Shown one piece after another: positions 10,884 through 61,100 of a DNA stretch of 64,000 bases. The stretch is from Selaginella moellendorffii (taxonomy: Eukaryota; Plantae; Lycopodiophyta): NCBI RefSeq assembly GCF_000143415.4, contig NW_003314369.1:434001-498000 (forward strand), given 5' to 3'. A program made the translations under genes and the position numbers. The notes under the pieces are model-generated. The model saw only the letters and a list, made by a program, of their open reading frames with translations. It searched no databases and was not told the origin of the DNA. Numbering within the stretch: position 1 is the stretch's first letter; each line of letters opens with the position of its first letter.

Positions 10884-12241
10884 TTAGAATTGTGTTATAA
10901 GCTCTTCAAAGGTGGCAATTGCAATGGGATTCACAGGAACTGAGACAAAAATCCCATCGGAACTAAGCGGGAGGAACGTGATATGAAAGTTTCGTGGATC
11001 CATTGGGAACTCCACTCGTAACGGCTTTCCCCCACCAAAGTCAAGCTCCAGGGACTTTCGCATCAGCCTCGGCCAAGCGTTGATCGTCGTCTCACATGGC
11101 TGGTACCAGAAGTTGGGATTGAGATGGAGAAAATCTCGTGCAGAACGAACGTACTCATTTGTCAATCGCTTTTTCGCCTCCTGGATTTGAGCAACGATGG
11201 AGGAGAGTGGGAGCTCACTTAGATCCGCGAGTGAGAGCTCGGCATGCGCTAGATATATCGAATTCCCGCAGAAGTTCTCACCCAATGGAGGATCCAGAAT
11301 GTTCCTCGTGTCAACTGCGAATCCAACGTGAAGAACATCGCTGCTGGATTTCCCTGGGATCGATCGAGCATGGGATCGCCAAATCAGAGCTGCCAGAGCC
11401 TCGAAAGTGGAGCACTCGCTCAAGATTCCTTCGTCCAGAACAGCTTGCTTGAGCTTGCGGAGCTTGTCAAACGTGAAGAGAAAGGTCTTCCTCTCAATTT
11501 TTGGAGCCGTTTTCCTCTTCGATTCGGAGCTAATCACAGACTCCTCGGTGAGAGTGTAGATACTGTGGCCACCATTGAGAGGTATCTGTTTAGCAAGCTC
11601 TTTGTGCTCGAAGCTCACACGCGGTGGATCCCGGTATTTAAGTTGAGTCCGGTCGCCATTTGGTATCATATAGAGACCGTCTCCCCGGTTGATGGATGCA
11701 AAGTTGAGCAGGAAATTGATACCAGAGGTTGCATCAACCAAAGCGTGGTGGAACAATATTGACATTGCGCAGCCACCGTCAAGCAAACGAGTTACCTGTA
11801 GGCAAATTCCTCAAGAAACAGACTGTAAATTTGTGTTCATACCTGGATACTCAATAGTGGAAGATCTTCCAAGGTTTTAATCTTGCAATCTTCAATAAAG
11901 AAGAAGTCATCAAAGTCATCAGCCGTCACTTGGTCCAAGCTAAGATCACACGTTGCAAGCGTGAAAAAAGCTCCCTGGTTTCTACAGCTGATCTCCATAC
12001 GCCCATTTTCATTGAAGTGCAGCCTTCCAGCCCAGAAATCATATGAACCCAATACCTCAGCCACAGATGATTTGAGACGATCCACATCCAAAGTCTTAGT
12101 TTCTGGCCCATAGAAGAAGATACTTCTCACATAGAATCCCAGCTTTTGATCCGCATCACACAGATACATTATGCGGTTAGGGCCTGGATTCCTTGCAACA
12201 ACACATGAAACACTGCAAACTTTCACCATGCCTGGAGCCAT
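10884..12241 (-). CDS. BAHD family acyl-CoA acyltransferase, 436 aa, 2 exons (12241-11843, 11795-10884)
   Basis: LKSSVAEVLGSYDFWAGRL, PLLSIQVT across the conserved Q intron (47 nt, GT-AG), catalytic HHALVD, STFEALAALIWR, and DFGGG variant of DFGWG. Confidence 0.93.
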
Positions 12242-35496: not shown

Positions 35497-37032
35497 CTAG
35501 CTAGAACTATTACGGCTTATAGCAACAGCTCTCTCTCCTTCGAACAATTTCTTGTGGACTCTAGCAAACACAGATGGCTGCGGACCGCAACTGTTGTCAG
35601 TCGTCTTGAAGTTGTCAAAATCCAAGCCGACTTTAGCAGCAGCAAGCCGCAGCTCGGGGAAAATGGACTTGGGGAGGCTTGAACTCCGTGTGTAGACGAC
35701 AGCTCCACCATAGCCGTCCCATGCATCGTTGGACCCATTGTAGTACACGAACATGTAGTCGTCAGGTTGCTTGTTGAGCCGGGCAGAGACGATGAACCTA
35801 CGGAAGAGCCACCAATCAATCCGTCAATTGCTCATTCAGAATTCGCAGCTATGCTGTCAATCGCGCACCGGACCTATGCACAAGGAAGCTTTGGAAGATT
35901 GCGAAACACTCACCAATCGTCTTTGTAATTGAGGTACTCGTTATCATGATTGGAGAGGACACCCGGGCGTTTGGGATTACTTTGCACGAAATTTTGTATT
36001 GCGTTGCGTGTGATGAAGCCGCCGTCGGGGGTGGTCACCCTCCACGTCAGTTTTCCGGTGAGCTTGTGGGGACTGGCCGAGAACTCATGAACTTGGCAAT
36101 CGTAGAGATCGAACAGGGGGTTGAGACCGCTGGTAATATACCATGTGCCTGTGAAGTCTTGGGTGTTGAACTTTTCCACCAGAGCGCAGTCTGGAGGTTT
36201 AGGGTAGGAGCCGTCGTTGGCACTTTGAGGGATGCACTTTTTTTTGCTCAGGAGGCATGTGTTGAATTCCTCTACGACCTTGTTCTGGAAAATGTCTCCG
36301 CATCTGACCTATATTCCGATACAAAACGAGAGAACAGAAACATAGTGAGAAACTTGATCCCAGGAAGCCTGTATAAAATTAAATAATACTTGGCAATTCA
36401 AGTCTCCTGGACTGCAAGTTTCCAGACAAACTAAATTGGCAGCGCATGAAGGATCTCCCACGCATCGAACCAGCTCGGATCTGAAGAACATGCACAACTA
36501 TGAGATCAGGTGGATTCAAAATAAACAATGAAACCCAACAAATGAGAAGTGGAACACAACAGCACCTGCATCCACTCAGAAGACATTTCCATGTTTTTTG
36601 AGCAGTCTCGATGTCCAGAGCTCCAGCACGGTTTGCTGGGTGCAAGAGCAAAAACGTCCCCAGGAGCAAGCCCCATGCATTGACTTTGAATCCCGGTCCG
36701 GTACTTGTCGCTGTTACATTCTTCACACTTCGGACAAGGGGGGGCGGAACCGTGGTACTGGCAACCATCTGCTCGTTCTTCTTCCCACATAGCAGCTTAC
36801 TACTCTTCACACTTCGGACAAGCGGGGCCGGAGCCGTGGTACTGGCAACCATCTGCTCGTTCTTCTTCCCGCATAGCAGCTTACTACTCTTCACATTCGG
36901 CCCAATACTTGTTGTTGCTACTCTTCGAACAAGCCAGTGCGGAGCCGTTGTAGTGGCAAACATCTGCTCCTTCTTCTCCACCTTCCAGCCGCAGCTACTC
37001 AAGTTGTAAGCGACCGCCTTGCAGTGATACAT
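35497..37032 (-). CDS. VDE: Violaxanthin de-epoxidase-like lipocalin, about 417 aa, 4 exons (37032-36566, 36480-36390, 36308-35914, 35797-35497), lacking the Glu-rich tail
   Basis: Cys-rich domain CLL.GCR.EL..C..DPSCAAN..CL.TC....CQVRCGD.F.N.VV.EFN.C..SKKKC. Lipocalin motifs [50 protein letters not shown] and TDNSCGP. An alternative in-frame ATG lies at 37257. Confidence 0.92.
36690..36990 (-). repeat. Coding tandem repeat, 84-nt (28-aa) period, in the VDE presequence
   Basis: Unit starts at 36722, 36806 and 36890. Two near-identical [26 protein letters not shown] units plus a diverged third. Confidence 0.92.
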
Positions 37033-37393
37033 TTCAGGAAGCCTCCGCACAGGACCGACCCGAGATGGACGTGCGCGGGGTGCTCTTCCTTCCTCCTTCC
37101 ACAGGGGTACAAAGTCCGTGTACGCAGCTGGTTTGGTCCGAGCGGCGTACAAGCCTTGCTGTGTACGTTTCTCGGACAAAGTCTTTTTCTCGATATGACA
37201 TTTGGGTCCTGTGGGCCATTTTAAAAGCCTGGGACATTCCACCCGCCAAGATTCCATGTGATTCAAAAAACGCACGTTTTCTAAAGGTACGATAGTTTGA
37301 AGACCTGGTGCCAGCTTTATAGGGCCGATTTGCAGTCGCTTTTTTTTAATAAATAATAATAGTAAAAAATCTTTTTCGTGGTGCTACAATCTA

Positions 37394-38510
37394 TTATTTT
37401 TTAAGTTGACGACGTGACACCAGCTTCTCCAGCTCCACTTCTCCACCCACCGCTTCCAGTTCCTATCAGGGCAACGAATCCGTCAAAATTTTCGTTTCCA
37501 TCTCTCTCACCTTTAGCCCCAGGAACAAACCGTACGGAACGCCATCAAACAGATTGGCATGGTGAATCTGAGGTTTGATGCTGAATCTAGAGCTGAATGA
37601 TTTATGGACAAACCTGGTGAGCAGCAGCTACCTTCTGGAAGTATGGTACATCGGCCAGTGGGCCAACTGGAAACCTTTGGTGCACCAGGCCGTCGTGAAC
37701 AAACATGTAGGCCATCCCGAAGATGGTGATGCCCAGGCCCTGGAATGCAATATTTTCAAAGCTACAAGAAATACTTCTATTACTTACTGCTCCAAAGCAC
37801 AGACCAGGAAGGAGTCCTTCGTGGGAGAATCCGTAAGACATGAGAGCTATAGCAGGGACTGCGTTCACAATGGCAAAAACGTCGTTGAGCTCGAATGGAC
37901 CTTGGCGAGGAACATGATGAGACTGTTGTAGAGAGACTTGTGGCAATTAACTGTCGGAAAATTTGTGTGTGCGTTACCTTGTGCATGCTCCACAAGCAAG
38001 AGTGCCATAGCGCTTTGTGTGCCCATCTAGCCCAAAACTCCATGCCCACCTGAGATTCGAGAAACAGAATAAAATCAATCTTGAACAGCAGCTTTGAACA
38101 TACTCACAGCTGCGCCTAATGCCAAAGACACGGTACCAAGGATTTCCAGAGCAGGCAATTCACTGCTGCCTTTCTGAACATAGTTAAAGATTTCTCTTTT
38201 GTGATCAAGCCTATGTGTGTCAAAGTTCACATACCTCCTGCATTTGCCACACGAATCTGTAACACGCAGCTCCAATGCTGAGACCGCCGATCAATGTGCT
38301 TGAGGCAACAGCAGCGAACAAATATGTTGTGCGCGCTGCTTTCTTCTTCTTTGTTGCATCTTGCTTCTTGCAAGTACGAGATTGCCCATCCTCCGACATT
38401 GACGCACCCAATACAATCGCTTTCAACTTCGGCCTTCTCAGAGATTTGTGCAATGGCGGCAGAGAAAGGAGCCCGCGAAGATTGAACGACGAACAAGGCA
38501 CTAGCGCCAT
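37394..38510 (-). CDS. BCH: Non-heme di-iron beta-carotene hydroxylase, 266 aa, 7 exons (38510-38235, 38173-38108, 38049-37978, 37922-37788, 37739-37614, 37567-37511, 37462-37394)
   Basis: GMEFWARWAHKALWH, HKSHH.PR.GPFELNDVFA, FVHDGLVH.RFPVGP and HQIHH....GVPYGLFLG: all four His boxes intact. Continuous 801-nt spliced frame. Confidence 0.95.
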
Positions 38511-44398: not shown

Positions 44399-44567
44399 TG
44401 TAAGTGTATGGAATATGGAAAAAAAATATAGAAAATGTGTATATCAATTAGCCTAAAAACCCTAGTTTATATATAGGAGTGAGTGGTCTGAATTGAAACC
44501 AATCCGATAGCTACCAAAATCCCACTATGTTAATATTAGTATATGGCATTGTAACTATACACATTGG
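44399..44567 (-). mobile_element. Solo/truncated LTR of the same family as 24956-25131
   Basis: tgt.agtgt.tggaatatggaaa...gaaaatgtgtatatcaattagcctaaaaaccta...gagtggtctgaatt...aaaatccc...ggcat aligns with both gypsy LTRs. Lacks the terminal ccctcaca. Confidence 0.88.
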
Positions 44568-53641: not shown

Positions 53642-55348
53642 ATGAGATTCTCGCTAGCTGCGAGCTCAAATCCAGTACAGGAATACGTGAAGCTTCTCAA
53701 GTTTGCTGGGCAGGCGAAGAATTTGGCCGAGGGGAAGAGGATCCACCGCGAAATCGAAACCAGCTCGTTTTCGAGTGACAAGTTCCTGTCCGATCACCTC
53801 ATCGACATGTATGGAAAGTGCGGCAGCGTTCACGAAGCGCGAGCCGCGTTTGAACAGAGCAACCAGAGAAACTGGAACTCGTGGAACGTAATAATCTCCG
53901 CATTTGCCCAAAACCGGCATTTCCATGATGCGAAGTTTGCGTTTGAGCGAATGCCAAAGAGGGACGCCATAAGCTGGACGACGATGTTAAAAGCCTACGC
54001 AAAAGCTGGCGAGCTTAAGGAAGCTGTAAACTTGTTTGATAACATGTTAAAAAGAGATGACGTCGCCTGGAACAACATGCTTGCTGCATATGCCCAAGAA
54101 GGGAATCTTTGCAAAGCACTTCTTACGTTCGATCTCATGCCGCAATGGACTGTTGTGTCGTGGAACACTTTGATCTCGGGGTATCTCGAGCACGGCTGTG
54201 CCGACGAAGCGACCAAGCTGTTCGATCAGATGCCAGAAGAGACTGTGGTTTCCAAGACTGTAAAGTTTCGGGCGAGTGCACAGGCCGGGAACATCCATGC
54301 TGCTCGATCGATTTTCGAGTCAATGATGGAGCGAGACGTGGTTGCCTGGAACGCGATGATCTCCACCTATGGTGAAAACGGATCTTCGGACGAGGCCAAG
54401 AAGCTGTTCGATCGAGCGAGTGAGCGAAACGTTATCTCTTGGACGTCCCTCGTCACGGCATTCGCTCTGGGTGGCCAGATCGATCGTGCGACTGGAGCGT
54501 TCAAGAGGATGCCTGGACATGACTCAGCGTCATGGAACTTCCTCATAACCGCGTATGCCCAAACTGGGCAGGACACCGAATCAAAGAGATTGTTCGATGA
54601 ACTCCCTATGAAGGATGTAATATCGTGGAATTCCTTGCTCATCGCGTTTGGGTGGCGGAAGTCCAAACACCACCTTCGTGCAGCGTTCGAAAAAATGCCG
54701 CAGCGTCACCTTATCTCGTTCAACGTGCTCATCACAGGATATGCCCAATGCGGGTGTATGCGCGAAGCACAAAACGCCTTCGATTCCATGCCCGTCCACG
54801 TTGTGCTAACGTGGAATGCCCTAATGGCGTCATACGCACACTGCGGGTTCCTCCAAAAGGCCAAGACCGTCTTCGACGAGATGCCCGTGCGAGACAGCAT
54901 CTCGTGGAACGCGCTCATGGCCGCATATGCCCGAGCCGGGCACGGTGACGTGTCGTTCCACGTGTGCAGGCTCATGTACCAGGACGGTGTACGCCCCGTC
55001 GACGTCACCTTTACCATCGTCCTCACGGCGTGCAGCCACGGTGGCCTCTCCAAGGATGGATTGCAGTATTTCCACTCGATTTGCGCGGACCACAACTTGG
55101 TGCCTTCGCTCGACAATTTTTGCTGCATGATCGATCTGCTTGCGAGGTCTGGGCGGACTGGAGATGCGCTGGAGCTGGTGGAGAGCATGCCGTACCTCCC
55201 CAACGAGGTTGCATGGGCGGTGCTGTTGGCAGGGTGCATGACACACAAAGATGTACGGCATGGGGAGATTGCTGGGAAGAGGTTTTGTGAGCTTAGCCCT
55301 TCCAAAGGTGCACCTTATGTCATGCTAGGCAAGCATTTGATTTCATAA
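53642..55348 (+). CDS. PLS-class PPR protein with E domain, no DYW, 568 aa
   Basis: LIDMYGKCGS, run of 31-aa repeats, FCCMIDLLARSG and W..LLAGC..H, ending at PYVMLG. Confidence 0.94.
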   Translation: MRFSLAASSNPVQEYVKLLKFAGQAKNLAEGKRIHREIETSSFSSDKFLSDHLIDMYGKCGSVHEARAAFEQSNQRNWNSWNVIISAFAQNRHFHDAKFAFERMPKRDAISWTTMLKAYAKAGELKEAVNLFDNMLKRDDVAWNNMLAAYAQEGNLCKALLTFDLMPQWTVVSWNTLISGYLEHGCADEATKLFDQMPEETVVSKTVKFRASAQAGNIHAARSIFESMMERDVVAWNAMISTYGENGSSDEAKKLFDRASERNVISWTSLVTAFALGGQIDRATGAFKRMPGHDSASWNFLITAYAQTGQDTESKRLFDELPMKDVISWNSLLIAFGWRKSKHHLRAAFEKMPQRHLISFNVLITGYAQCGCMREAQNAFDSMPVHVVLTWNALMASYAHCGFLQKAKTVFDEMPVRDSISWNALMAAYARAGHGDVSFHVCRLMYQDGVRPVDVTFTIVLTACSHGGLSKDGLQYFHSICADHNLVPSLDNFCCMIDLLARSGRTGDALELVESMPYLPNEVAWAVLLAGCMTHKDVRHGEIAGKRFCELSPSKGAPYVMLGKHLIS

Positions 55349-55507: not shown

Positions 55508-58000
55508 TCAAATCTTTGAATACAAGTTAGAGATGGCAATGTGAGCAGAAGAACTTTGGGTGTTTTGCTGGAGAAGCTGCATTGCCATAAACACACCCGT
55601 CTTGTCAACGCTAGCACCATGGCATCCACTCAGCAATGCCATCCACTTGATAGAATCCGGTGTGGTTGGCATCGTCTTGAGCAGCTGACGTGCCTCCTCC
55701 AGCCAACCCCCTCTCGCCAACAGATCAATCATACACCCGTAATGCTCTGGAATAGGATCCATGTCATAGTCCCACCTCAAGGACGAAAACAGGTGGCAGC
55801 CAACGTCCGCCACGCCAGCATGGCCGCACACACTCAGCACGCTGACGAAGGTGACAGCCGTGGGAGCCACGCCCTGCTGGACCATCTCCGCGAGTACGTG
55901 GAGCGCCTCACTGGCATGGCCGCTCTGGGCATACGCCGCCAGCGTGGAGTTCCACGTCACCACGTTGTCGGCCGCCCCGACGCCTTGGAAGATCGAGCGC
56001 GCTGTGGCGAAGTCACCGCATTTTCCATAGAAGTTTACTAGCGCTGTGGCGACCACGCTGTCTATCTCCATGCCCGCCTCCAGGATGGAGTCGTGGATGA
56101 TCTTTCCTTTCCGGAAGAGTTGCAAGCTTGCTCGAGAGTTTATCACTGTGGCGAGCGTGACGCTGTCCGGATTGTGGCCTTGGAGCTCCATTGCTCGGAG
56201 TAAATCGAATGCCCGGTCGGGATGCCCGAGTCGTGTATGCGCTGCTATCAACAAGTTCCAGGAGATAACGCTCGGCTCGCCTATCCCATCGAAAGTTTCG
56301 TTCGCGTCTTCCAGGCTTCCACAGGCGGAGTAGACTTCCAAAAGAGCGTTTGCGACGAGCGGATCCTTCTCCCAGCCCAACTGCCTGATCCGTTCGTGGA
56401 AATCTCTCGCTGAAGAGAGATTCGTGCAAGCACCGAGAGCTGCGATGAGTGCCACCCTGTCTGGAGTGTGTCCCTCGAGCTGGATTCGTCGAAAGGTGAT
56501 AGACGCCTCGTCGAGAAGCCGTGCTTGAGTGTAAGCTCCAAGCATTGTTGTCCAGGAGATCAAGTCCCGCGACTCCATCTTCTCGAAAACCAGCTTTGCG
56601 TCGTCCAGTCGGCCACAGGCTGCGTACATTCTCACCAGAGCTGTCCCAAGAACTGCGTCGAGGCGGTATCCTTGCTCAAGAATCTCTTCGTGAGTTTTTT
56701 TCCCGGTTTCCAGCCCGAGAGAGCTCCCTGTTGCTGTGCAAGCTGATAAGATCGATACGAACGTCACCTTGTCCGGCCTCACTTGATCGAGTTTCATCTG
56801 TTCTTGCAGCTCCATCGCGTCCCTCAAGCGTCCGTGCTTGGCATAGGCTGAGAACATACAGTTCCATGCAGCCAAGTCCTTCGCTCGCAAGCTGTCAAAC
56901 ACCATCTTCGCAGACTTCCTATCGCCTTGCTCGCTCTTGATCTTCACCAGGGCAGTCCCGACCAGTGTATCCGAATCCAAGCCGCTCTCAACAGCCAAGT
57001 CGTGAATTGTCTGTAAACTTGAGGCTTGCAACGTGCTGCTCTTGGCACAAGCATCGAGGACTGTGAGCAAAGTGTGCTTGTCACCTTTCCAGCCATCGAG
57101 CAGCATCTTCCGGAAGAACTCGAGAGTTCCTTGGGCTTCATTAAGGGAAGCGTAGCCGGCGATCATACTGTTCCACACTAGCAAGTTCCTGTCTGCTATC
57201 CCATCGAAAACCAAGCTTGCATCCTCCAGCGAACCACACCTCCGGTACATTTTGATCAGGGCGTTCCCGACGAAAGCATCCGAGTCTAGACCACTTTGCT
57301 CGATCAGCCGATGAACTTTCCTTCCGGCATCAAGATCGCAGGCGTTGAGAACAGAAACGTACGTGATCTCGTTTGGAGCTACCCCTTCCTGTAGCATCTC
57401 GATAAACAGCGTCAGTGCTTGCTCGAGACACCCTCTCTCGACGTAGGCCGAAACCATTGTCGTCCACGACACTATGTTCTTCCGGAGAAGCCTGTTGTCA
57501 AACACTCGCCTTGCCTCGTCTACGCTGCCACACTTGGCATACATCCTCACAAGTGCGGTTCCCACGTCCACGCTCCACTCAAAGTCACTGCCCTGAATCC
57601 TCCTGTGCACCCTTCTTCCCTCTGCCAAGCTCCCACTTTCGCTACAAGCGTTGATCACTGTGAGGAGAGTGACTCTATCCGGAACCACGCCTTCGTCTAG
57701 CATCCGATGAAACAAGCCTGTTGCCTCTTGGAGATGCCCGACCCGGGCATAAGCTGCCATCATCGGAGCCCACAGTCCAGCGTCTCGAGAGGCCATTTTG
57801 TCGAACACCTTACGAGCGTTATCCACGCTCTTGCATACCAGGTACATGTGAACGATACCATTGGCCAGATGTAAGTTCTTGTCCAGTCCATCACTCACGA
57901 TTTGAGCATGTAGTTCTTTGCCTTTCGGCAAAGTATGACATGCACGTAAGCTTGCTGCTAAGTCTGTTACTGTCGTAGAGATTGTCAACACTGCCAGCAT
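55508..58000 (-). CDS. PLS-class PPR protein (P-L-S triplets) with E domain, no DYW, 830 aa
   Basis: ALVRMYAKCGS, SWTTM..AY, GV.PN.ITYVSVL.AC triplets, HYGCMIDLLARGG, ending at HIAISNLY. Confidence 0.95.
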   Translation of the reverse strand: MLAVLTISTTVTDLAASLRACHTLPKGKELHAQIVSDGLDKNLHLANGIVHMYLVCKSVDNARKVFDKMASRDAGLWAPMMAAYARVGHLQEATGLFHRMLDEGVVPDRVTLLTVINACSESGSLAEGRRVHRRIQGSDFEWSVDVGTALVRMYAKCGSVDEARRVFDNRLLRKNIVSWTTMVSAYVERGCLEQALTLFIEMLQEGVAPNEITYVSVLNACDLDAGRKVHRLIEQSGLDSDAFVGNALIKMYRRCGSLEDASLVFDGIADRNLLVWNSMIAGYASLNEAQGTLEFFRKMLLDGWKGDKHTLLTVLDACAKSSTLQASSLQTIHDLAVESGLDSDTLVGTALVKIKSEQGDRKSAKMVFDSLRAKDLAAWNCMFSAYAKHGRLRDAMELQEQMKLDQVRPDKVTFVSILSACTATGSSLGLETGKKTHEEILEQGYRLDAVLGTALVRMYAACGRLDDAKLVFEKMESRDLISWTTMLGAYTQARLLDEASITFRRIQLEGHTPDRVALIAALGACTNLSSARDFHERIRQLGWEKDPLVANALLEVYSACGSLEDANETFDGIGEPSVISWNLLIAAHTRLGHPDRAFDLLRAMELQGHNPDSVTLATVINSRASLQLFRKGKIIHDSILEAGMEIDSVVATALVNFYGKCGDFATARSIFQGVGAADNVVTWNSTLAAYAQSGHASEALHVLAEMVQQGVAPTAVTFVSVLSVCGHAGVADVGCHLFSSLRWDYDMDPIPEHYGCMIDLLARGGWLEEARQLLKTMPTTPDSIKWMALLSGCHGASVDKTGVFMAMQLLQQNTQSSSAHIAISNLYSKI

Positions 58001-58117
58001 TTGGATCTGTCGCTAGAAAAACTACACACCGTTATATGTACAAAGAGAAGCTTTTCTGTACAAGCTTACCTCGAAATGAAAGAACTCTACCGCCACCCGA
58101 CTGTACAGAAGGATTTT

Positions 58118-61100
58118 TCACACTGCCAGTGACAAGAGGAGCGCTGTGCCACGCTTCACCCAGTGGTCTGGACTGGCGTTTCCAGTCTTCAACGCGACGT
58201 TGAGCAGAAAACTCGGCCTTTCTCTCGTTCCCGTGCGAATGGGATAGAGAAATAGAGGGCACATGTAGAGGCCCTTTGGAACTTTTTTCTTGTTGACAAC
58301 CGGTTTGAAAAGAATGATAGGCATTGGCACTATCAGTTCCATCGGCTTTGGTTCCTGCGACAAAAAGTGGTTTAGCTTCAGCGATGGCAGAAAAGAAACT
58401 TACTGTCAAGCATTCGTTTTTCGAGTCCCATCCTGCTCCTTCCAAGAACAGTCCCTTCACGTAAATTCCTTCTTTTGGCGGCTCCTGAATATCACTCTCC
58501 TCCTTGTTGATGATAGTGAATTCCCAAGTCAAAGTATCGACTGGTATCAAGTTTCTTCTTGCTGTTGTCTGAAGAACAGCAGTAAGAAAATCAGCGGGAT
58601 ACGTAAATCCAGCGAGCCAATATACGAGAGGGTACGTCCTCTCTGCCCAGTTCTTCAATTCAATTATCCTTTGCAAGAGGTCTCTTGTCCAAGGGCCCAG
58701 AGGTTTTAAAGAAGGATACGCTCTACAGGCATCAAGCATGAGCAACAGATAAAAGGAAAGAGCCTCGAAAAAACTTACTTGAGCCATTGTGCAGGCACTC
58801 TTGCTTCAGCAAGTGCGTTGAACATAAGCTCCAAGTCCGGAGACATTGATACAAGACCTTGCACAGCCTTCTCCAAAGTCAAACATGATTCACGCATATT
58901 TTTGAGAAGAATGTTGTATCTCTCAAGCTCCTGGAAAAGAACAGTGTGCAATGCTGATGGATCGTGCGCTTTTTGTGCTTGTATATCAGCCAAGTCGAAT
59001 GGTTCGGGTATCTGAAACAAGAAAACCGTCATCGCCTGCAGAGAATGAAAACCTTGAAGAGGCCTACCTGTTGGATGAGATCGGCAAGAACGTTTCCAAC
59101 CATTTCTTCGGTGCTAAGGCCGCCTTTACTGGTGGCCACCCTCGGTTGCAAGCTCGTGATAGTCTCCAGGACGATTTTACTGGCAGCGAGCTGAGAGGCA
59201 ATGTCAGCGTTGCCATGCTGGCCAAAGGCCTCCGGTTTGTCGACAGTCGGGAGCGTCTGTATAAACTCTTTGTGACTCTGCAGAGTTCCATCATCAGGGA
59301 TGTGATAAACGGGAATAGAAGAAAGCTGATAATTTTGGTTTGCGAGGGCCTCTTCGCAGTAGAACTGATTGAGGTAAGAAGCGAGGACACGGCGGTCGAG
59401 CTCGTCAGTGACTCGACCACCGTAGTTGGCTTCAGATATCAAAAACTTGAGAGCATCGAAAGGAGTAATCTCGTACTCGTCCAGGTACGTTTTAAGCAAA
59501 TCATCTGAGACCTGCATTTGAAAGAATCCCGGATCTTAGCTAGCCGGAAAGAAACGTAGTGAACTTACTTGAAAATCCGTGTCGTTGAAATCGTATGGAA
59601 TGTTAAAGCCCAGTGTCCCAAACTTTCTACGCTCGAGAAGCACGCTGTGGAAGTAAGCGAGTGCAAAGAAAAGCTTTTGGTACTTGTGCTGTGTTTTGCA
59701 CGCAAAGAACGACTCTTCTGTCGTTTGATTATAGAGCCTGGTAAGGTTAGCTCGCAGACCCTGTGAGAAAAAAATTACTTAGAGGCAATTCATCGTCATT
59801 CTTTCCAACCAAACCTTTGGAGGTTCTGCTGTCATTTTAACGCTACGTTGAAGGATAGAAATGGGGAATTCCGAGCTCGGTGCGCTAGAAAGCCAAAGCC
59901 TAAACGTTTCATTCGGCTTACTCTTTTCCAGGCCCTGAAGAACCTTCTCAAGCGTAGGCAGCCATTTGGTCATAAGATGGCAGTTCGCAAGGAATACCCA
60001 GCCGCCAGCTTTTGCCTGAAAGAAAAAAAAAAGAAAAAAAGAAAAAAGGAAAACAGATTTAATAGAAAGAAACTTGATATACTTACTGCTTCGTTGATCA
60101 GCCTGATTGCAACAGGACCCTGTCCCTGTCCCAAGGCCACCGCATGAAACTTGTCTTGGATGCCTTTTGTCTGAGCAAACTGTTGAAGACCGGTTGTAGG
60201 ATCCACACCTGATAGCAAGTTTACGTCAGTGACTTTCTTCGAAAGTAAACAGAAAACATACCAGCTGAGAGAATAAAGAGAAGCGGGTTCACAGGTGACG
60301 AGTCGCTATAAGATTCTGCTAAGTCCAGAATTGGTGGCTCAACAAATTTCTGACCCAAAAGACTCGAAACGTATGTTGTGATCGAAAAAATTAGACGATC
60401 CTGCAGACATCAGCATTTAGAAAAGAGGCCGCAGCAGTGTTGTGACTGATACCTGTCGGAAGCACCGTAAAATAATCAGACGCTGCAAGTCATTGCATTT
60501 GTCCTCCCAGTCACCAGGCAGCTCTATTTGCTCCGGCTCCGCAACTTTATACCATTGCTCCCATTTACCTCGCTCCTGTTCTAGGCTCGCGGCCTGTCAA
60601 ACGAGCTTACGTTTAAACAAGCAAGAAATAAGCTGGAGTCCTTTACCAGCTTTTCGAAGTGAGGAATGGCTTTGGAAAGCTCTGTCACATCATCCCACGC
60701 CTGTTCTGAGATCCATGGTGCCGGAATTGGCGGCTGAGATGATCTGTCGAGAACTGTACCGCCCCTCAGGAAAAACTGCCACTCTTCATTTGAAATGACA
60801 TTTGATGCTTGCAAAATTTTTGCACAGATCTGAGGAGATGAGACAGCAACATAAGGAGGTCTTATTTTCTAATAATCAAGAGATACCTGGAGCGAAAGGA
60901 GGAGTTTATGCTTTTCAAACAAACCGCGAGAGGTATATTTATAAACTGCGTAAGTGTGGTACTCAATCAAGGCCTTGATTCGCTCGCTCAAGTTCTCGGA
61001 CCTGAATAAGAGACACGTTAGCTTACTGATGTTTGAATGACGCACACTTACTTAGGCGCCCGTGCAATGGAGATGACGAACAAAACCGTGTAAGCCTCCA

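Follow-up and report, generated by a model that had tools for sequence, protein, structure and literature searches.

Beta-carotene hydroxylase (BCH) and violaxanthin de-epoxidase (VDE) are non-homologous, zeaxanthin-forming enzymes of one pathway. BCH is a membrane protein, VDE is found in the thylakoid lumen, and the two are not expected to bind each other. To our knowledge, plant carotenoid genes are otherwise unlinked, and it is unusual for two zeaxanthin-forming enzymes to be inherited as one block. The DNA analysed here (the window: 64,000 nucleotides of the lycophyte Selaginella moellendorffii, scaffold GL377673.1) carries such a block: on its minus strand, a seven-exon BCH gene (38510-37394) is followed by a four-exon VDE gene (37032-35497) whose product lacks the acidic C-terminal tail.

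The closest described systems differ in kind. Canonical plant VDEs (VDE/NPQ1 of Arabidopsis; protein P0017 of S. moellendorffii) combine an N-terminal domain rich in cysteines, a lipocalin domain, and then a Glu-rich C-terminal domain of about 100 residues. The VDL1 and VDL2 proteins of stramenopiles and haptophytes also belong to the lipocalins of the VDE family, with the acidic domain lost or replaced (PMC13181403; the tail is absent also according to PMC2483416). VDLs are reported only outside Viridiplantae, confined to chromalveolates, and a 2026 review suggests that, with the tail gone, they may be constitutively associated with membranes and have a biosynthetic rather than regulatory role (PMC13181403). 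Plant BCHs (BCH1/BCH2, CrtR-b) share four histidine (His) boxes; in honeysuckle, a BCH paralogue kept alongside the canonical BCH genes is a rhodoxanthin synthase (LHRS).

An earlier note on this stretch, made from its sequence alone, proposed that the pair is a co-regulated module of two divergent genes, perhaps with new chemistry. The present analysis points elsewhere. The tail-less VDE forms a new clade; the BCH is of the conventional kind; and neither co-regulation nor novel chemistry is supported. The window probably holds haplotype 1 of one locus (locus B) of a Selaginella-lineage cassette of BCH and tail-less VDE, with likely active enzymes and a linkage that is historical. The elements of the pair are as follows.

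37394-38510, minus strand: BCH, a beta-carotene 3-hydroxylase paralogue of the non-haem di-iron type (RNA joints, His boxes, RefSeq PF04116 call)
38510-38235, 38173-38108, 38049-37978, 37922-37788, 37739-37614, 37567-37511, 37462-37394, minus strand: BCH exons (RNA joints and sequence reading)
37033-37393, minus strand: spacer that runs from the BCH stop to the likely VDE start, with the BCH 3' untranslated region and the VDE 5' untranslated region inside
35497-37032, minus strand: tail-less VDE paralogue (RNA joints, PF07137, 3cqn)
37032-36566, 36480-36390, 36308-35914, 35797-35497, minus strand: VDE exons, stop codon at 35499-35497 (RNA joints)
36720-36900, minus strand: 84-nt tandem repeat, 2.2 copies, 94% match (Tandem Repeats Finder)
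36566-36660, minus strand: end of VDE exon 1, with a hydrophobic stretch and an A-x-A site, then the beginning of the Cys-rich domain (read from A1, an alignment with canonical VDEs)

The gene models draw on two runs of stranded RNA-seq reads and on RNA contigs of two further runs, with exact exon boundaries refined by reading the sequence. GT..AG joints are seen for eight of the nine introns of the pair (5/6 in BCH; 3/3 in VDE), and the strand of the first mates agrees with minus-strand genes. These joints, the match to PF07137, and the His boxes confirm what the earlier note had read: an intact seven-exon BCH directly upstream of an intact VDE on the same strand. Its two spacings are likewise correct, the BCH stop lying 136 nt from ATG 37257 and 361 nt from ATG 37032. 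The first of these is the start annotated for RefSeq XP_002990454.2 (P0006), 75 residues upstream of the second, for a product of 492 residues; the locus of that protein (L002; assembly GCA_000143415.2, GL377673.1) matches window positions 25497-47257 at 100% identity. ATG 37032 is the likelier start, and the RefSeq N-terminus is probably over-extended, because ATG 37257 lies within a stretch of zero RNA depth (37144-37277, in all four runs) and the spacer evolves at a roughly neutral rate. (The Jukes-Cantor distance of the spacer to sister locus A, described below, is 0.11-0.14, close to the dS of 0.12.) No ATG occurs between 37201 and 37032. Judged from contig ends, BCH RNA reaches 37336 or lower and VDE RNA 37104 or higher, so the untranscribed remainder is at most about 231 nt.

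The VDE, 417 residues long from ATG 37032, has each of its three introns backed by 6-39 spliced reads per run. Its exon pieces match PF07137 at 2.7e-51, 4.4e-23, and 9.4e-06, and together span positions 10-242 of the 242-position profile; the Arabidopsis VDE lipocalin domain (PDB 3cqn) is matched at 7e-38. Only 29 residues follow the TDNxC motif, where 115 other VDEs have a median of 96. Among the 123 top land-plant VDE clusters, fewer than 60 residues after this motif (26-30) are found only in five VDEs, all from the cassette. The Glu-rich C-terminal domain is not present, and about 60-67 residues are missing by alignment A1. A C-terminal deletion of about 71 residues, near what is missing here, was reportedly tolerated in the 2002 work of Hieber. 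RNA coverage ends just beyond the stop codon, and no additional RNA joint that would mark a further 3' exon was seen at the locus. The earlier description of this VDE as tail-less thus holds.

What precedes the missing tail is of VDE type. Residue roles were taken from PMC13181403 and mapped through the 3cqn alignment and alignment A1. The former shows D98, D114, D117, Q119, H121, F123, R138, Q153, F155, H168, D177, and W179 to be kept; the latter adds Y198, D206, Y214, and the cysteines. Shared with canonical VDEs, therefore, are the catalytic residues D177 and Y198, and W179; the ascorbate-site residues D114 and Q119; and the pH-switch residues H121, R138, D98, D117, H168, and D206. KDDW aligns to QDDW of 3cqn, and FVYYNG to the invariant Y411/Y412 columns of A1. 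All 12 essential cysteines, ten in the N-domain and two in the lipocalin, are kept, in columns that are invariant in A1. Three positions have changed: C7 to W, T112 to L, and H174 to N. T112L is a known tolerated variant, and C7 is the only cysteine whose mutation leaves the enzyme active, C7S being fully active (PMC4412432). Partial C-terminal truncation leaves activity largely intact in vitro, according to a passage of the same paper that cites Hieber 2002 (PMC4412432).

In other respects the protein stands apart. It is about 59% identical to any canonical VDE, that of its own species included; compared with these, it carries six extra residues behind the predicted signal cleavage site and lacks two in the Cys-rich domain. 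The end of exon 1 is consistent with a thylakoid-lumen signal, and alignment to canonical signals suggests a presequence of lumen type. Within this presequence, the 84-nt repeat codes a repeated 28-residue unit; the other haplotype (L003, P0014) is one unit shorter, and the unit is single at loci A and C. The window VDE alone reads SYPKPPDC (36195-36201, minus strand) where all other cassette copies read SYPVPPDC and locus C TYPV-PDC, a substitution private to this copy at the point where the Cys-rich domain joins the lipocalin domain.

The BCH gene runs from ATG 38510 to a TAA stop at 37396-37394 (801 nt, 266 residues). Its exon translations contain all four His boxes: HKALWH, HKSHH, HDGLVH, and HQIHH (HX4H, HX2HH, HX4H, and HX2HH). 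The 266-residue RefSeq product at this position carries PF04116; a Pfam scan of the separate exon pieces gave no match, which is attributed to short pieces with intron read-through. Intron 5 (37568-37631) has two donors: 37613 keeps VAAAHQ, and 37631 drops these six codons. For the productive form (37613-37568) the indication is loose RNA ends at 37570; only the alternative donor was seen as a joint (37567>37632 in run X4, depth 39). The alternative isoform loses the first His of the fourth box and is probably inactive.

For similarity searches the open frame of exon 4, intron, and exon 5 served as the query; the comparisons were otherwise made one exon at a time. Over exons 4-5, identity to canonical BCHs, that of the lycophyte Diphasiastrum among them, is about 80%. 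At the 57 columns that are at least 90% conserved among 28 cluster representatives, the window BCH differs at none. It does differ from plant BCH1/BCH2 and CrtR-b in reading HKSHH rather than the HESHH of most land plants, LGLK rather than LGPK, and VPRQ rather than RPRE. The K of HKSHH, however, is found in 7 of the 28 representatives, and the L at the LGPK position in one. The earlier note had taken the enzyme for divergent and had read the second motif as LGAK; the sequence there is LGLK (GGG CTA AAG), and in the wider comparison the enzyme is not divergent in any meaningful way. An N-terminal extension occupies the place where canonical BCHs carry a transit peptide. The gene is distinguished from canonical BCH genes by its physical coupling to a VDE gene. 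Judged by its sequence the enzyme looks conventional, with no sign of changed chemistry, though sequence alone cannot settle chemistry.

Neither gene is the sole orthologue of its kind, in agreement with the earlier suggestion. The canonical tailed VDE of the species (P0017; 438 residues, 59% identical, with a Glu-rich tail ending RKLR) lies on another scaffold and is unlinked to any BCH: its neighbours at locus L006 are a pyridoxal-dependent decarboxylase and a BRX gene. (A partial second canonical VDE, residues 5-207 at 67-84% identity, lies at L006 4596-5359, about 5 kb upstream on GL377637.1.) A second BCH, with the common HESHH motif, is expressed under the same species label, as reads overhanging a conserved 44-nt stretch of exon 4 give WDMHESHHRP and AVPAIALLAY.

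The linkage itself recurs in this genome: RefSeq/GenBank VDE proteins of one 90% cluster led to cassette copies on six scaffolds. BCH or a BCH remnant lies directly upstream of a tail-less VDE at four loci, represented by seven assembled copies, and both window genes are intact, expressed, and constrained.

Locus A: L001 (GL377643.1) and L004 (GL377633.1); BCH intact in L004, premature stop in L001
Locus B: the window/L002 (GL377673.1) and L003 (GL377649.1); BCH intact in both
Locus C: L005 (GL377637.1) and L007 (GL377630.1); BCH dead, short-chain dehydrogenase following VDE
Locus D: L008 (GL377643.1, 170 kb from A); BCH without exon 1 and with a stop

Identity is about 98% within allele pairs, 96% between A and D, 93% between B and A or D, and 86% for C; the pairs at about 98% fit two assembled haplotypes. 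Locus B alone has kept both of its genes intact on both haplotypes. All seven VDE copies have open frames and end at the same shortened point. In L001, CAA has become TAA in BCH exon 1 (window-equivalent position 38363), and the RefSeq product there has 212 residues. Locus A is thus a heterozygous null or N-terminally truncated BCH, since allele L004 is intact.

The flanks tell how the window locus came about. At sister locus A, adenosine-deaminase (A_deamin) and RCC1 genes follow the pair. Copies of both were co-duplicated and have decayed in the window, where blastn with L001 and L004 finds them at 70-96% identity.

29461-33132, minus strand: decayed A_deamin and RCC1 copies

Their products have 153 and 197 residues in the window, against 419/386 and 1039 residues at locus A. 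These flanking copies mark segmental duplication as the event that created the window locus.

Like plant metabolic gene clusters and pairs, the cassette joins two non-homologous genes of one pathway, adjacent on one strand, 361 nt apart, recurring at four loci, and inherited as a unit. Unlike such clusters, it comprises only two genes, its adjacency has been multiplied by block duplication, and half of its loci have lost one partner. Outside the species, VDE is absent within 10 kb of the Diphasiastrum BCH locus (L009); no tail-less VDE orthologue at 62-90% identity from other species appeared in a search of named proteins, in which coverage of other Selaginella species is uncertain; and no description of a Selaginella VDE/BCH pair or a tail-less plant VDE was found in the literature searched.

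Selection was gauged from dN/dS (the ratio of nonsynonymous to synonymous divergence), counted codon by codon within exons. Between loci it is 0.17-0.32 for mature VDE and 0.15-0.37 for intact BCH, against 0.42-0.70 for dead BCH copies. Between-locus dS is 0.10-0.17, and intron and spacer divergence is about the same (0.10-0.15 against locus A). Both window genes are under purifying selection, and the spacer is unconstrained.

A maximum-likelihood tree built from 32 VDEs groups the five cassette proteins in one clade (100/100 support) whose crown is short. The stem leading to it measures about 2.2 substitutions per site, or roughly threefold the path to other lycophyte VDEs. Left unconstrained, the tree keeps this clade apart from the canonical VDE of the species, though an approximately unbiased test does not reject that grouping (p = 0.165). 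The clade nests among land-plant VDEs, at an attachment within them that the tree does not fix, and its nearest relatives are 57-62% identical. An origin of either gene by horizontal transfer was considered and rejected, since the closest homologues of both come from land plants.

RNA shows both genes to be transcribed, but reads over the pair are dominated by cross-mapping from locus C. Over the VDE, 37 of 38 common read variants match locus C (L005/L007). The strongly expressed tail-less VDE in these runs is accordingly the locus C copy, which lies beside a dead BCH. Expression specific to locus B is nevertheless seen in a 668-nt BCH contig with 0 differences and in VDE pieces with 0-1; each run adds 12-15 raw reads that match at 99% identity or better.

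These observations suggest the following account. The juxtaposition of BCH and VDE would have arisen once, and segmental duplication would then have spread the pair and its flanking genes to four loci. At locus B each gene is spliced and transcribed on its own, and both are constrained. From its His boxes and conserved columns, the BCH most likely hydroxylates the beta-rings of beta-carotene to give zeaxanthin, as canonical BCH does. From its residues, cysteines, and presequence, the tail-less VDE has most likely remained a de-epoxidase that turns violaxanthin and antheraxanthin into zeaxanthin, though one that, lacking the acidic tail, probably departs from the canonical enzyme in pH-dependent membrane binding or oligomerisation. 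As for the linkage, block duplication seems to have carried along a historical accident rather than an obligate, operon-like unit: the pair is not an obligate module because BCH is dead at two of the four loci while VDE lives, the most expressed VDE among them.

Several points weigh against this account. BCH has been lost at loci C and D, and one locus-A allele has a premature stop, which shows that in places the pair can do without its BCH half. Within the VDE itself, H174N and the six residues inserted behind the predicted signal cleavage site are departures. The window copy's own expression is low in the runs sampled, most of the VDE reads that map there belonging to locus C. Lastly, the canonical BCH of S. 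moellendorffii is known only from two 30-nt read overhangs bearing the same species label, not as a gene.

A historical cassette of likely active enzymes remains the favoured reading, and it makes the VDE a useful natural variant: its tail was lost long ago, its catalytic residues are all kept, the gene is still under purifying selection, and the canonical tailed enzyme of this very genome serves as a comparison. What the tail contributes to pH-dependent membrane binding, to oligomerisation, and to the kinetics of non-photochemical quenching thereby becomes directly testable.

Among the alternatives, the one that survives best is that the copies are redundant duplicates in slow decay: a recent segment without a distinct role, in which the window copy has not yet been hit and adjacency means nothing. 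The BCH losses, the decayed neighbours, the few locus-specific reads, and the recent between-locus dS are all as this would have it. Yet both genes show ongoing constraint, with dN/dS at 0.15-0.37 in comparisons of loci and alleles; all seven VDE copies are open with the same shortened end; and a long stem with a short crown implies that the tail-less form was kept for long before it was amplified. Slow decay is unlikely.

Quite unlikely as well is that the tail-less VDE is a green-lineage counterpart of VDL, uncoupled from the lumen-pH switch by being membrane-bound or by working at milder pH, and supplied, in a shade-dwelling spikemoss, with a dedicated BCH for a standing zeaxanthin pool or a non-standard xanthophyll. 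(Were this true, the gene pair would be the first carotenoid mini-cluster in a land plant.) Loss of the acidic domain from a VDE-family lipocalin is common to both.

Very unlikely, in turn, is the full proposal of a specialised, co-regulated two-gene module with new chemistry, in which BCH would act like the honeysuckle rhodoxanthin synthase or VDE like an algal VDL that forms an allene of the neoxanthin type. Both genes are paralogues alongside canonical copies, as LHRS is; the VDE clade has a very long stem and, like the VDL proteins, no tail (PMC13181403, PMC2483416); and both genes were kept under purifying selection while their co-duplicated neighbours decayed. Against this, the window VDE keeps D177 where VDR and VDL, the neoxanthin-forming proteins, have E (PMC13181403); the substrate-contact residues checked in VDE are all of VDE type; BCH matches its family at every conserved column; and HKSHH is a common natural variant. 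Unlike LHRS, the window BCH has no sequence or pigment sign of retro-carotenoid formation. The earlier note had named rhodoxanthin as reported from stressed Selaginella; no primary report of it was found in the literature searched, no paper was found that ties it or these genes to S. moellendorffii, and nothing at the locus bears on it. Nor does the co-regulation half of the proposal fare better: no read-through or co-regulation was seen at the locus, VDE persists without BCH at two of the four loci, and the spacer is not conserved above the neutral rate.

Least probable of all is a co-transcribed, bicistronic, or read-through unit with VDE driven from the BCH promoter, for which the narrow untranscribed gap and a run X6 contig at locus C (depth 106), which passes collinearly out of the BCH remnant and into the 5' region of VDE, would speak, whereas no read crossing the spacer at the window locus was seen in the four RNA runs (with BCH depth so low that the zero-depth stretch has weak power), and a two-gene contig is no proof of a single transcript. 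That contig joins the window-equivalents 37621, 37452-37420, and 37046-37016. It seems that the highly expressed locus-C VDE mRNA begins inside the dead BCH, a hint of read-through there that the contig alone does not prove. The matched stretches are these.

L007 9009-9413: locus C, run X6 contig
L005 9750-10134: locus C, run X6 contig

The surroundings of the pair had been described as gene-poor and repeat-rich. Repeats are present, in the form of one retroelement fragment and a dispersed 164-nt repeat. The gene-poor look of the flank is largely due to the decay of the co-duplicated A_deamin and RCC1 genes, and with further genes elsewhere the whole window is not gene-poor.

24956-25119, 29158-29321, 44399-44562: 164-nt dispersed repeat, three copies around the pair
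26597-27163, minus strand: RNase H fragment (PF17917) of a long terminal repeat retroelement
18737-20791 (minus), 53642-55348 (plus), 55508-58000 (minus), 58032-58787 (minus), 10884-11786 (minus), 14080-14862 (minus): other window genes

These other genes encode three PPR proteins and pieces of three more: the C-terminal part of a dynein heavy chain, a BAHD-type acyltransferase, and an amino-acid transporter.

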